From Dimorphilus gyrociliatus (taxonomy: Eukaryota; Animalia; Annelida), in contig CAJFCJ010000003.1 in assembly GCA_904063045.1 (NCBI GenBank), forward strand, positions 124,001 to 188,000: 64,000 nt of DNA, read 5' to 3'. Positions 26,101 through 32,100 of the stretch are shown in pieces. Both the position numbers and the translations under genes were made by a program. The first letter of the stretch is position 1; the number at the start of each line of letters is the position of its first letter. The notes under the pieces were generated by a model. That model made no database searches. It worked only from the letters and a program-made list of their open reading frames with translations, and had not been told where the DNA came from.

Positions 26101-29100
26101 TATTCCTATTATGCTGTCCGTGTTTATTTAGTAATATTAATATTAGTAAGTATTGTTATTGGTTTTTATCAATGATTTCTATAAATAAAGGATGCGTAGC
26201 TAAAAGTAATATCTCCTTAATTTTTTCCTTCTTATTCATTAAGGAACTTTGCAATTAGCAGTTGAAGAACGTAAAATATTTCAATAGTCTTATTAATAAA
26301 GAATTAATCTAGGGGAAACTCATCTCTATCGCCCCCTTTCCCTCTCTTTCTCTCTCCCTTTCTGTTTTTCTTCCCTTCTTTCCCCACCTTCTTATTTCTC
26401 TCCCATTTACATCGTTAATTAATTTCATTTACTTTTTTATCAAATATGTTATAGAAAAGATACTTGAATTTCCTTTATAAAATGCTACCTTGTGTGTTTC
26501 TTTTTGTTTTTCGTTGTCGTCTCCTCGTAAAAGACGAGCGGGCAAGTGGGATAGTTTGAACTAGCTGGCTAGCTAGATAGATAGATAGATATATAGATGG
26601 AAGGCAAGCTGGCTGGCTTGCTGGCTGCCTGGATGAATGGATGGATGGTTGGTTGGATAGAGATATAGATTAAGTAGAGAAAAAACATAGCTGAAAGAGA
26701 GGGACGTTTATGACTGTAGGAAGAATATTAATAGAAAAAAAGTTGACTAAATAAATCAAATTGGTTACAATTTGTCAAAGTAGCAAAAAAATGTAAACCC
26801 TACAATCCATGGGTGGTAAGGCTCATGTCTTTACGCGTAGGCAGGTTGAAAGATAGAGTAACAACTAGTAATAGTAATGGTAGTTGGATTGAAAACTTAT
26901 TACTGTTTGGGAGAGTATATGGAATTTCCTTCGAGCAGGTACAAATTAATTAAATAATATTGAAGTATCGTATATACTATTTATAAAAAAAGAGTATTAA
27001 GCGAAGAGGCTTGTTTGCCAGTTATATTTGTCTGTAGATGGCAAATAATAAGAGATAGGCTTAAGTCTAGGTGTTGATTATCCCCTTTTTTGTAATTGTT
27101 AGAAAGCCAAATGAGATTGTGGTGCCTTTTTCTCGTCACAGTTGCCTACTTGTTTGCTTGTTTGTTTATGCTAGAATTTGTAAAGGAAAGATTCTCATGT
27201 ACAAACCTGTTTACCTCCAAGCATTGAATCGGTAGCCCTTTTCAAAGCATCCACAATAGACTCCCTACAGCAGTAATAAGAGTCGAATTTACTCTTCATA
27301 ACGGAATCATAAACGTTCATGGCGGGGGCCAGCAATTTTTCCAATTTTGATAATTGATAAAGTCTATGAACGCCTGTGACGCATTGTTCAATAACCCCTT
27401 TTAAGTATTTAGAAGCCGTTGGAAATTCTGAAAGCATTCTATGAGTAGCATCTCCACCGTCGTCTAAAATGATATTGGGTTGCCAATTATCGGAATGCAA
27501 AGTTCTATCGATGCACCACCAAAAGTCTTCTTCCGTTTGATTTCTCCAGGCAAAGATCGATATTCCAGCTTCGGCAAGAGCAGCAGCAATTTGGTTTTGG
27601 GTTGAATAAATGTTGCAGGCTGCCCAACGAACTTGCGCTCCCAGGCTAATTAGAGTCTCAATTAGGACAGCAGTCTGGATCGAGATTCACAAACTTTTAT
27701 ATTTCTTAATATTAATTACTGTATAAAAACTCATCGGCAACCTGATTAATAAGTGTAACAATACTAAACTAATACTAATACTAGCTTAAATTAGAGTTAA
27801 AGATAAGATAGAACGCTAACGTATTACTTATTTTATGTTAAGGTTAAGCCCTAATTCCCTGCGTAAACACTAGAGTGTATAGACTCTTGCCTGATCTACG
27901 TAAATCTAGTTGTTAGGAATAGATAGAATAAACCTATTAATTCATCTTCCTATTCAATTATCATCGTATAAAACAAATATAATAAAAAACAGGGAAGGTA
28001 ATCAATCGATTAGATTGAGGAACAAGAGAGTTTGACTCCCTTTTCATAGAAGATATCTAAAATTGCCAAGATTTTACAGGCTAATCTATTCAATCGTCCT
28101 TTCCCCCGTATAATACCTACTACGTACGCTAATTGCTATTTATATATCTGATATATGCAAATTATTTTAGTTGGTAAATTAACTTCCATAAGAATACGAA
28201 GCTTTGAGAGTGCATCTTTCTTTGATAATATATTTTCCATTTAGATTTTCTGCACTCCTCTTTCTGATTTCAGCTCTAAGATAGACAGGAAGGGAAGAGT
28301 TAGAGAGACAAATTCTAAATGTGGTAAATGGGTAAGAATGGCTAAAAGCTTGTGAAATTATTCTTTGTAAGCATATACCGTTTAGAAATCGGTTAGCTGA
28401 CCTAATTGTCTAGGCTTACTGTTGAGTCCTGAAAAGATAATTCATTTGAATACTAGTTTATCCAATCATTGTTTGGTATTTCTTTTCCTTTTCTCTTTTA
28501 TTTTTGGTGTTATTGTTGAATTAATCCTTTTCACCTGCGCGAAGAGACTATCAAAGGATAAAAAGTCTGCTTGTAGAGCAATATCAACTAGTGTAGGGAA
28601 ACAATAGGGGCCACATGCTGTTGAGTTATTTTAGAGAACTTGTTGTAGATTCTTTTACGTAGCTACCTAATAAATTATGTTCACCTTTCTCAACTGCAAT
28701 ATGACTTGTAAGAGGGCGTCTCTACAATAGAGCTTTATTGGATAGTCTATTCGCAGTTCAGATCAATTACAGCCTTTAAAATTCTACTCTATTGTCAATT
28801 AAATAGCGTAAAAAGAATTAAAAGAGCTTTTCTGTCCTTTTTATTCTCACCAATTTCGCTTTTCTCTCTCTCCGCCATTTGCGCTTTATCCTCCTTCCCT
28901 TTATCTGCGTCCCCTCGACTAGCCTCCCCGCCAATTCACTCCTCTACCCATTTTAAAGTCTAATAAGGAATAAAATACTATACTGAATACATCGTAATAA
29001 AGTGAAAATTTCTAAGGTTATGCAATTACTATGGAAAGGGTCTGTGCATAAATAGATCAGTCGTCGTGAGAAGGAAATCAATTAACAGTTTACTCTTTTA

Positions 29101-32100
29101 ATTATTTATCCTAGAGTCTTTTAAAGGGCTGTAATGTCTTTATGGATGTTGCATAACTAAAGTTAGGGCGCAAAATTGGGACATGTCGATGAAAAATGCA
29201 TAGATGATTGGATGATAGTCATTTATATATATATATGTAAATGCAAACATATATTAATATATTTTCAAAGAGAGAGAGAGCGAGAGAAGGAGAAAGCTAA
29301 TCAAGTTAGAGCGAAGGGTTACTTAAATTGAAAAAAAAGGGATAGATTAAATAAATAAGTAGATTTCACCATTTTTGAAAGTATGTGATTGCAATAAACG
29401 CTAAATACTAAAAGTATTTCATAGAGAATAATCTCTTTTAAAAGGATAGTTTCTTTTTTCTTACTAGATTAAAGTTAAAATGTTTCTCTAATCATAACCG
29501 AAATGTTTTAGCTTAAAAGAAATTAGACAGCGAAAGTCTGTGGTAGGTAAAGAGAGCAATAGAAAGCGGCAGAAAGAGACTGTGGGAGAGGGAGAGACGG
29601 GGGAATAAAGAGAGAAATGAGAATATTTCTTTTTTTTTGTTTTTCAACTACTTGGCACTGAAAGGATTTGCCTATAGAATGCTCTAAGAATTTTATGATA
29701 TTAGTTTCTTTGAATCTCGTCCCTGAGCTGTGACGTGAGTACAGCCGACAATCTTTGCTCCTTGTAATGGTTTACCGCTCTTCATGTTTTTACGTAACGA
29801 AATCAGACCCTGCATCTCGACTGCAATGAAACAAGAAAATAAAAAACAAAGTAAATTACGATAGTCTTTTTTCCGTGTTGAGAAAAATGATTGATAGGTT
29901 TACGTAACGATAGTAATTAATTGGCTGAAACCCTTATTGCCCTTTGAAAAGTCTTTAGCAGGGTATCTACTTATAATTAGAAATTAACAAACTTTGTTCC
30001 GCAATTTCAATCTCCTTCCTCCCATCAAAATGCTGATTTATATCCCTGACTCTAAAATCTGAAAATCCTTTGCTGTTTCTCTGAGTTTGGTCTCTGGGAT
30101 TTGCCTCATCATCAGATGACGAATAATTTGAAGCTGTTTTGGAGAAAAAAGCAGGATTAGACTTAAGATTTATGGTAAAAGAGAGAGGTGTGATGGCATG
30201 GGAGAGGGAGGCGGTGGCTGAGAGGGATAGAGATAAAAAAAAGAGATATCTAGTTAGCTAGCTAGCTAGATAGATAAAGCTAGATAGCTAGATAGCTAGA
30301 TGAAAGAGAGAGAGAAAGAAAGAAGATGAAGAATACCATTATTTCCTGTTAAAGGCTTAAATACATTTCTAAAAAATAGTAAATTTTTCCAATTGAATGA
30401 ATGAATAAGCCACATGTCAGTAGTGTTGTTGAATTTTTCAAAATGTCTACCGAATCTGAATAAATGTATAAATACGGATTGAATTGCTCTTAATGAAATC
30501 GTCACGAAAGCTAGCGGGAACACGTATCTTATACGTGCAAGATTATAGTTGACGTATACGTTTCCACGTCTACCATAAATTTCATGTTAATTTACATCGT
30601 ATTTGCATTCGTTTCAGACTATTTTTAAGAATATATTATTGTTGTCTTTGACATTTGAAATGAATATTTCGAAATTTTCAATTGTAAAGAAGCAAGTGAA
30701 AAGGAATTAGACATTGATTATAGAATATTATATAGAGTATCTACTGGGTATACTGTATACTATACAGTATATATACTAAATATATAGTTATATATACATT
30801 CCTATTATATTGAAAGAAGAGTACTTGGAAATTACAATATCATTTATATTAGCGATAGGAGCATTAATCGTAGTCTATGATTTTTGTGTACTACAAACGA
30901 TGTACCTATTTTTTTTAACTGTTGACTGACGTATTCTAAGATAAAGCATGGTTTTTGCATTATACACGATACATATATACATAATAGTATATACTGTATT
31001 GTGCTGGAAATTATGATTTAAAGGATTTCATTGGATTAAAAACATTCTGTGAGGTTTATTCTAAAAAACGTTTCCACTTTGCTATTAAAACAACAACAAT
31101 TTGATAAAATGAAGTCTCTCTTTTCTTATGTAATAATTCATTCTAACCCTTAGCTAATATATGTAAATTCTCTGAGGTAAATCTTTAACCCATCAACCCT
31201 GGCTCTCTTTCTCATCTTTGCTTTCTCATTACCACTGCTTCCCCCTTTCACTCCCTCCCTGCCTCTTTTTCGCTCTTCTTTCGCCTCTACTCTTAATTTA
31301 TCAATCCCAACTTTCTCTATTTTCTTCACCTTTCCCTGGCTCGTTTCTCTACCCCTAAGGCCTAGTGGAAAACTATGTATGTCAAATTCACCATTAACTG
31401 CAAAGACAAGAAATATCCCTGAAAGAAAAACATATAAGATTGGAATTTTATTCTTTCTTTCTCCCTATCAAATTTCTTTTCCTCTTCTTTCTCTTCTTTC
31501 CCTTCCTCATCTTTTTCGTTTCATCTTTATACTTTTTTAATTAAAGAAAAATATGGAGAAAAGAGAGGAAAAGAAGGAATAGAACGTGAAGGGCAAAACG
31601 AGAAGAGGAGTCGGTAAAAGAAAGACACACGGAGAATAGAAAAAGAAAGAGAATGAGATAAAAAGAAAGAAGGGGAAAGGAATGCAATATTACATACATA
31701 TGTATAAATTTATTAGAATATTTAACTATTGTACTTTTGAGGAATGGACTATTGAGAAGGTTTAAAGATGTACTTGAAGAGGAAAGAAATAGCATATATA
31801 CAGTGTATATAGCGTATTTCACTAGGCAACTATAAGCGTTATAGAGTAAAATATTCCAGATATAAAATGATTCTCTTTCTCTTTTTGACTTATAACCAAT
31901 AATTGAATTTTTGTCAGTTTCGTAATTTACTAAATTTGGCTTTTGCGACTGAATAAATTTAATAAATACAAATTAACTTATCAATTTTCATGCAAGAGAA
32001 ATAACTAAAACAAAGGAAGCAATGGTAACGACAATGCTTACTAACAATAGTTATTATAAACGCATTCAAAACAACAATCATTCATTTTTAATTTTCAAAA

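Follow-up and report, generated by a model that had tools for sequence, protein, structure and literature searches.

Intron gain is rare in animals and its sources are debated; transposon-made non-canonical introns have been documented only in fritillariid tunicates. In Fritillaria borealis, canonical introns occupy conserved sites, whereas non-canonical introns that end at terminal inverted repeats (TIRs) are found at species-specific sites (PMC11282704; bioRxiv 10.1101/2025.08.15.670264). These introns end at the TIRs of a non-autonomous DNA element (Henriet et al. 2019, via PMC11282704; bioRxiv 10.1101/2025.08.15.670264), their termini are mostly AG/AC and AG/AT, and 90-95% of the introns are non-canonical. 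This work describes intron 3 of the AHCYL gene (IRBIT-type adenosylhomocysteinase-like, minus strand) of Dimorphilus gyrociliatus, a miniature annelid from the sea, located in a stretch of 64,000 nucleotides (nt) that is referred to as the window (positions 124,001 to 188,000 of contig CAJFCJ010000003.1, assembly GCA_904063045.1, which PMC10212961 assigns to this species). The intron is real and is excised from RNA, although it starts with GG and not GT in the assembly, and it is a transposon-like, non-canonical TIR-ended intron in a phylum without earlier reports.

In single Fritillaria genes the GT-AG introns are conserved in position and the non-canonical ones are species-specific, a pattern that AHCYL matches (PMC11282704). 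Removal by the major spliceosome has been reported for Fritillaria (bioRxiv 10.1101/2025.08.15.670264) and is probable for the AHCYL intron. The two systems differ in their termini, as the AHCYL intron keeps G...AG and deviates only at +2, in the share of canonical introns (three of the four mapped in the worm gene) and in the host, which is an annelid and not a chordate. The introners of Amoebophrya (PMC7789003) likewise carry inverted repeats of 8-20 nt that pair both ends of the same intron, with direct repeats of 3-5 nt over the exon/intron borders, non-canonical termini and a hairpin predicted to join the exon ends, and the authors propose a mechanism other than standard splicing. In Amoebophrya, a protist, no U1 components have been identified and the termini follow no preferred dinucleotide, whereas the AHCYL termini are compatible with the spliceosome. 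The nonconventional introns of Euglena (PMC12501133) are also non-GT-AG, lack a pyrimidine tract and bring their ends together by pairing; their signature, offset from the borders, is unmatched by the AHCYL intron, and the Euglena machinery is unknown.

An earlier note, made from the DNA of the window alone, had fixed the exon junction at GCT CAG|ACT and proposed an intron at 27675-29722 without a usable GT or GC. Contigs from four public RNA runs were aligned to positions 24400-30200, and the joint 29723/27674 was present in three of these libraries. Exon 3 ends GGC TGT ACT CAC GTC ACA GCT CAG at 29723 and is followed by GGACGAGATTCAAAGAAACTAA; the intron terminates in ...AAAAGTTTGTGAATCTCGATCCAG at 27675, after which exon 4 opens with ACT GCT GTC CTA ATT GAG at 27674. 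On the gene strand, the longer ends of the intron start GGACGAGATTCAAAGAAACT and finish AGTTTGTGAATCTCGATCCAG. The RNA joint (27674->29723) removes exactly 2048 nt, the ends of which read CT..CC on the forward strand and GG..AG on the gene strand. The spliced product reads TAQ|TAVLIETL and keeps the full conserved peptide, and unspliced read-through from exon 3 runs into an in-frame TAA after nine codons. The joint was found in X1 (a marine metatranscriptome; 483-nt contig, 98 nt on the short side), in X2 (a coral-tank metatranscriptome; 287-nt contig with one difference, 98 nt on the short side) and in X3, where spliced contigs at a depth of 395-443 show zero differences from the window. X3 carries the label of another organism and behaves as RNA-seq of D. 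gyrociliatus. The introns at 29821-29992 and 24553-27206 are spliced as GT-AG within the same RNA contigs. The upstream canonical donor CAC|GTCACA, named in the earlier note as the alternative, was used by none of the RNA contigs, and VTAQ is retained.

Three letters (CAG) fit either side of the joint, which leaves four registers (GG..AG, GG..CA, AG..CC and CA..TC); a G at +1 combined with a terminal AG occurs only in the GG..AG register. The upstream copy of this CAG direct repeat forms the end of exon 3 (29725-29723), and the downstream copy consists of C 27677 and the AG at 27675-27676. The intron and its terminal features are as follows:

27675..29722, minus strand: AHCYL intron 3, 2048 nt, GGACGAG...GATCCAG, GC content 32%, microsatellite-rich interior (RNA joint and sequence)
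29711..29722, minus strand: 5' splice site and 5' arm GGACGAGATTCA, intron +1..+12, fits GnAnG and GRACGWGATTC (duplex and full-length fold)
29703..29707, minus strand: 5' side of the second helix, AAACT, intron +16..+20 (duplex and fold, pair probability 0.68-0.85)
27691..27695, minus strand: 3' side of the second helix, AGTTT, intron -21..-17 (duplex and fold)
27677..27689, minus strand: 3' arm TGAATCTCGATCC, intron -15..-3, with one bulged A (duplex and fold; read without differences in an unspliced X3 contig)
27675..27676, minus strand: acceptor AG (sequence and RNA joint)

Removal of the intron is incomplete. An X3 contig that retains it (27648-29638) runs across the acceptor into exon 4 and breaks off at a low-complexity stretch. 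Its depth is 50 against an exon depth of 395-443, and therefore about 11% of the transcripts keep intron 3 and about 89% are spliced in X3. The neighbouring introns of 2654 and 172 nt have a depth of approximately zero, and intron 3 is thus spliced less efficiently than its neighbours.

The libraries also gave an observation on the distribution of the worm. The metatranscriptomes of coral-tank (X2) and marine (X1) origin contain AHCYL mRNA that is near-identical and 97-98% identical, respectively, to that of the worm, and runs under four other organism labels each contain the same 19% of the sampled exon 4 words (27195-27674). D. gyrociliatus or close relatives seem to be common in aquarium and coastal samples.

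The two ends of intron 3 are complementary. The 22 nt at the 5' end and the 24 nt at the 3' end can anneal at -20.4 kcal/mol through 12 and 5 base pairs: +1..+12 pairs with -3..-15 (one bulged A) and +16..+20 with -17..-21. As DNA, the two termini can be aligned as inverted repeats of about 20 nt, indels included. The inverted repeat running from +1 to -3, as described in the earlier note, holds up against chance: 0.02% of random partners for the 5' end (n=20,000) and 0.06% of random end pairs spaced 0.2-3 kb apart in the window (n=20,000) reach this energy. No other site inside the intron approaches this pairing, and the end duplexes of the other three AHCYL introns are limited to -4.8, -2.0 and -5.7 kcal/mol. 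A fold of the whole 2108-nt precursor retains the terminal helix in its minimum-energy structure; the pair probabilities are 0.86-1.0 from +1 to +11 and 0.78 at +12.

The donor CAG|GGACGA, within the donor-side sequence GGACGAGATTC, matches CAG|GTAAGT at six of the nine positions (neighbouring introns: 5-7), in agreement with the earlier proposal of a residual U1 match, and lacks the T at +2. The acceptor has, as also claimed, no real pyrimidine tract. Over the 30 nt that precede it the pyrimidine fraction is 0.40 with a longest run of 4, whereas the neighbours have fractions of 0.60-0.80 and longest runs of 6-11, and the 3' arm of the terminal helix occupies the place of the tract. Candidate branch sequences (TTAAT and TTAAG) are located about 30-40 nt from the 3' end. 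Within the AHCYL gene, the non-GT donor, the end pairing and the missing tract are unique to intron 3. Two animal systems from the wider literature share part of these traits. The marine animal Oikopleura dioica, with its compact genome, reportedly has G*-AG introns (GA-, GC- and GG-AG), in which the major spliceosome accepts any base at +2 and G+1 and AG are kept (Denoeud et al. 2010); to our knowledge, neither terminal inverted repeats nor end pairing have been described for these introns, unlike for the AHCYL intron. In teleosts, structure-bridged introns reportedly pair through repeats near their ends and can dispense with U2AF2, the structure being proposed to replace tract recognition (Lin et al. 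2016). Complementary ends and a weak or absent tract occur together in intron 3 as they do in these teleost introns, which are said to differ in being GT-AG and in pairing through simple repeats, whereas the AHCYL intron has unique inverted repeats that start at +1.

Three known intron types were tried and rejected. A U12-type intron requires RTATCCTT/TCCTTAAC, whereas the 5' end here is GGACGAGA and nothing TCCTTAAC-like is found in the last 60 nt. A stwintron was discarded as there is no GT in the first 60 nt past the exon end, hence no internal intron starting at +2. For a Euglena nonconventional intron, positions +4..+6 read CGA and the triplet 5-6 nt before the 3' border reads CGA or TCG, at odds with the signature.

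The exons of the gene were mapped with representative AHCYL proteins and tblastn against the window. Five coding exons encode a product of 504 residues that aligns over its full length to vertebrate and trematode AHCYL. Exons 3 and 4 correspond to residues 40-71 and 72-229 of human AHCYL1 (PDB 3mtg), with none gained or lost. The remaining features of the gene, including the two introns used as controls, are:

33882-33732, minus strand: AHCYL exon 1 (protein mapping/tblastn)
30133-29993, minus strand: AHCYL exon 2 (protein mapping/tblastn)
29821..29992, minus strand: AHCYL intron 2, 172 nt, GT-AG, control (conserved AEQ|E/D-M site, phase 1)
29723..29820, minus strand: AHCYL exon 3 (PDB 3mtg residues 40-71; RNA joints at 29820 and 29723)
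27207..27674, minus strand: AHCYL exon 4, TAVLIETL...MLGGKQ (PDB 3mtg residues 72-229; RNA joints)
24553..27206, minus strand: AHCYL intron 4, 2654 nt, GT-AG, similar-length control, without end pairing and without a retention signal
23899 (approx.)..24552, minus strand: AHCYL exon 5, ...PNYYRF (protein mapping; 91% amino acid (aa) identity to the related-species contig L009)

Intron 4 is bordered by CAG|GTTTGT...CAACAG|GTT. To place the introns among animals, AHCYL genes with genomic DNA were compared for two vertebrate loci (L002 and L005), for L003, which we take from its accession prefix to be Tetraodon, and for a trematode (L004). The source of L004 is named as Fasciolopsis buski (PMC8519440). 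Further AHCYL homologues were short metagenome contigs without introns (P0001 and P0034) or a fragment only (P0011). A phase-0 GT-AG intron at TAQTA|VLIETL is present in all four compared genes (L002, L003, L005 and L004), and this site is ancestral for bilaterians because it is shared by deuterostomes and a spiralian. The worm sequence ACT GCT GTC CTA is uninterrupted at TAQTA|V, and the worm intron is located 6 nt upstream, at TAQ|TAV; this offset from the conserved bilaterian site means that intron 3 has not simply been inherited. Worm introns 1 and 2 occupy conserved sites. Four introns are mapped in the worm, whereas the trematode has nine and the vertebrates have 11-18; the worm gene has lost most of its ancestral introns. 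The sole non-canonical intron among the four is one that lies off the ancestral sites. This non-ancestral position is a new observation and, as far as the compared genes indicate, supports a transposon origin. As a separate observation, worm intron 4 (GGKQ|V, GT-AG) is not at a vertebrate or trematode site either and lies 27 nt from the vertebrate one. Its position is shared by a related species (Logan contig L009), a contig that spans exon 5 only, with intron 3 outside it.

Because the inverted-repeat ends start at +1, AG or CAG stands on both sides and the position is non-ancestral beside a lost intron, we lean towards reading intron 3 as a lineage-specific spliceosomal intron of the introner kind, derived from a miniature inverted-repeat transposable element. 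The ancestral AHCYL intron at TAQTA|VLIETL would have been lost in the Dimorphilus lineage, like most introns of the gene, and a non-autonomous DNA element with TIRs (GGACGAGATTCA... and ...TGAATCTCGATCC) would have inserted at a proto-splice site, CAG|A, located 6 nt upstream of it. Splicing would then take this element out of the pre-mRNA, along with one copy of the flanking AG, as a GG-AG intron. G+1 and the 3' AG are retained; the exon-end CAG, G+1, A+3 and G+5 make up six of the nine U1 consensus matches, and the major spliceosome of the worm would tolerate a base other than U at +2. The 3' arm, which takes the usual place of the pyrimidine tract, is flanked by the likely branch region and the AG, and the helix would join both splice sites across 2 kb and probably offset the weak signals. 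Insertion, major-spliceosome removal and a helping role of the helix are all probable on the present sequence evidence, and the helix may alternatively be a neutral or mildly harmful leftover. The transposon origin put forward in the earlier note thus gains from the position 6 nt off the conserved site and loses from a terminal motif that is single-copy in the window; the AG/CAG that the note compared to a target-site duplication stands on both sides, and at 2-3 nt it is too brief to tell such a duplication from chance.

Several observations weigh against a transposon origin or an assisting helix. In the 64-kb window, GRACGNGATTC (one mismatch allowed) matched only the two arms of intron 3 and one chance site, and the fetched loci likewise yielded no further copy of these termini. 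Transposon features are absent from the 2-kb interior, and both Tc1-like elements of the window, whose ends are unrelated to those of intron 3, were rejected as autonomous partners. The AG/CAG repeat is common at exon ends, and chance alone would give many introns a repeat of 2-3 nt that ends in AG. About one in seven random insertions would fall as close as 6 nt to an ancestral site (an estimate based on ~16 ancestral sites per ~1.5 kb of coding sequence), and the old intron may instead have slid to the present place. U1 is usually impeded when a helix covers the 5' splice site, and a retention of 11% is as compatible with hindrance as with help. Lastly, the GG at 29722-29721 rests on the assembly, and the unspliced RNA contigs cover none of 29647-29722.

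The proximity is the starting point for an alternative without a transposon, in which the old intron changed in place: it shifted by 6 nt, mutation destroyed its GT, and the pairing of its ends evolved, or was kept, by selection as a rescue of the damaged donor and the tract-less acceptor. The old site and intron 3 are both phase 0, AHCYL intron 2 also deviates slightly from its orthologues (by an extra codon), and ends without further copies in the window around an ordinary AT-rich, microsatellite-rich interior suit such a history. We nevertheless consider it unlikely, as a 6-nt slide that leaves an invariant peptide intact requires matched shifts at both ends, which is rare, and an inverted-repeat alignment of ~20 nt with indels exceeds a minimal rescue helix. 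Just as unlikely in our view is that the transposon origin is true and the helix a mere TIR leftover, neutral or mildly harmful, with a spliceosome that accepts any base at +2. The donor does fit GnAnG, intron 3 is retained more than its neighbours, and the 5' site is exposed during transcription of 2 kb, before its partner arm exists; yet 17 terminal pairs persist while the interior has decayed or grown to 2 kb, and the 3' arm sits exactly where the pyrimidine tract is missing.

The other explanations concern the data or the machinery. Should the GG be a mistake of the assembly or belong to a minor allele, expression would come from an allele with GT and the intron would be an ordinary GT-AG intron with inverted-repeat ends, as is conceivable for a base that is known from the assembly alone. 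This is improbable: the CC at 27677-27678, read without differences by the unspliced X3 contig, is complementary to GG and was obtained independently, and it would not pair with GT. Single-base T>G errors are moreover rare in polished assemblies. A helix that spans +1 to -3 exactly, together with the lack of both GT and a pyrimidine tract, would also suit a non-spliceosomal excision in which the stem defines the cuts, as proposed for the Euglena nonconventional introns. G+1 and the final AG are, however, exactly what the spliceosome needs, the ends do not match the Euglena signature 5'-N3CDG ... CH'GN5-6|R (PMC12501133), and the comparable Fritillaria introns are removed by the U2 spliceosome (bioRxiv 10.1101/2025.08.15.670264), which makes this explanation very improbable. 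The joint could finally be the product of a reverse transcriptase that switched template across the hairpin, between the CAG repeats. Such switching typically occurs where a stable hairpin is flanked at its base by short direct repeats. The joined form nevertheless makes up ~89% of the X3 signal and recurs in three independent libraries, and retention would add nine codons and then a stop, although the exons beyond it have remained intact, with 61-66% identity to vertebrate AHCYL; an artefact of this kind is therefore excluded for practical purposes and is the least probable of the explanations considered.

We regard it as possible, though somewhat short of probable, that Dimorphilus carries a genome-wide class of recently gained, hairpin-closed, TIR-ended introns with GG, GA or GC donors and no pyrimidine tracts, in which RNA structure substitutes for U+2 and for recognition of the tract by U2AF. 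PASA and EVidenceModeler favour canonical splice sites by default. Genes with such introns may be mis-modelled, and published figures of intron gain and loss may miss the class; the D. gyrociliatus genome was annotated with both programs (PMC7854359). The accessible portions of the genome paper and its supplements (PMC7854359) do not mention non-canonical splice sites, and the species is not listed in the part of the supplement to a pan-eukaryote introner survey that was available (PMC9860276). A literature search retrieved no paper linking Dimorphilus with introners and no introners described in annelids; for Dimorphilus and non-canonical splicing it returned only a minor-intron survey, which cites the species for minor intron loss. 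The present case adds an RNA-verified GG-AG, TIR-ended intron in a culturable annelid with resources in chromatin accessibility (ATAC-seq), cap analysis of gene expression (CAGE) and RNA-seq. If the genome-wide class is real, transposons would have produced non-canonical introns independently in this lineage, making it the second such case among animals, next to Fritillaria, and the first among spiralians. The Dimorphilus genome, published as 'conservative' and compact, would then host recent intron gain and offer a second animal system for the origin of introns, for a spliceosome without U+2 and for RNA structure that replaces the pyrimidine tract.

Other elements of the window were recorded as well. 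A Tc1/mariner element at 34080-35736, directly upstream of AHCYL exon 1, is young, with TIRs of 253 nt that are 98% alike and an intact open reading frame for a 331-aa transposase (34455-35450, plus strand). A second Tc1-like element at 55209-56883 encodes a 332-aa transposase (55489-56487, minus strand) and has older TIRs (61 nt, 79% alike). No RNA family was detected with Rfam across the whole window. Scanning the window for inverted repeats of 9 nt that carry AGG on the 5' side and have AG behind the 3' arm gave 24 pairs and missed the bulged AHCYL case; one look-alike pair, 9560/13209 (GGAC...GTCC|AG), was rejected for its lack of flanking exons. In the region of a carotenoid oxygenase gene, a possible canonical intron at 15578-15951 (G|GTAATTAA...TTAATTAC|CAG) has ends that form a perfect 9-nt inverted repeat.

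At its 3' end, the AHCYL reading frame extends beyond the usual ...PNYYRF terminus to a stop at 23839 (window 23839-23905), and a CAG|GTTTGT near 23903 resembles a further AHCYL donor; the C-terminal end and last exon are hence provisional. An exon 5 query returned no protein models of 121-385 aa from the animal's own genome. A non-coding block at 23336-23466 (L009:2937-3067), located some 430 nt beyond the last AHCYL codon that was mapped (~23899), is 88.5% identical to the related species and has an invariant core of ~55 nt, whereas the coding exon is only 79% identical at the nucleotide level. This block may be a conserved element of the 3' untranslated region.

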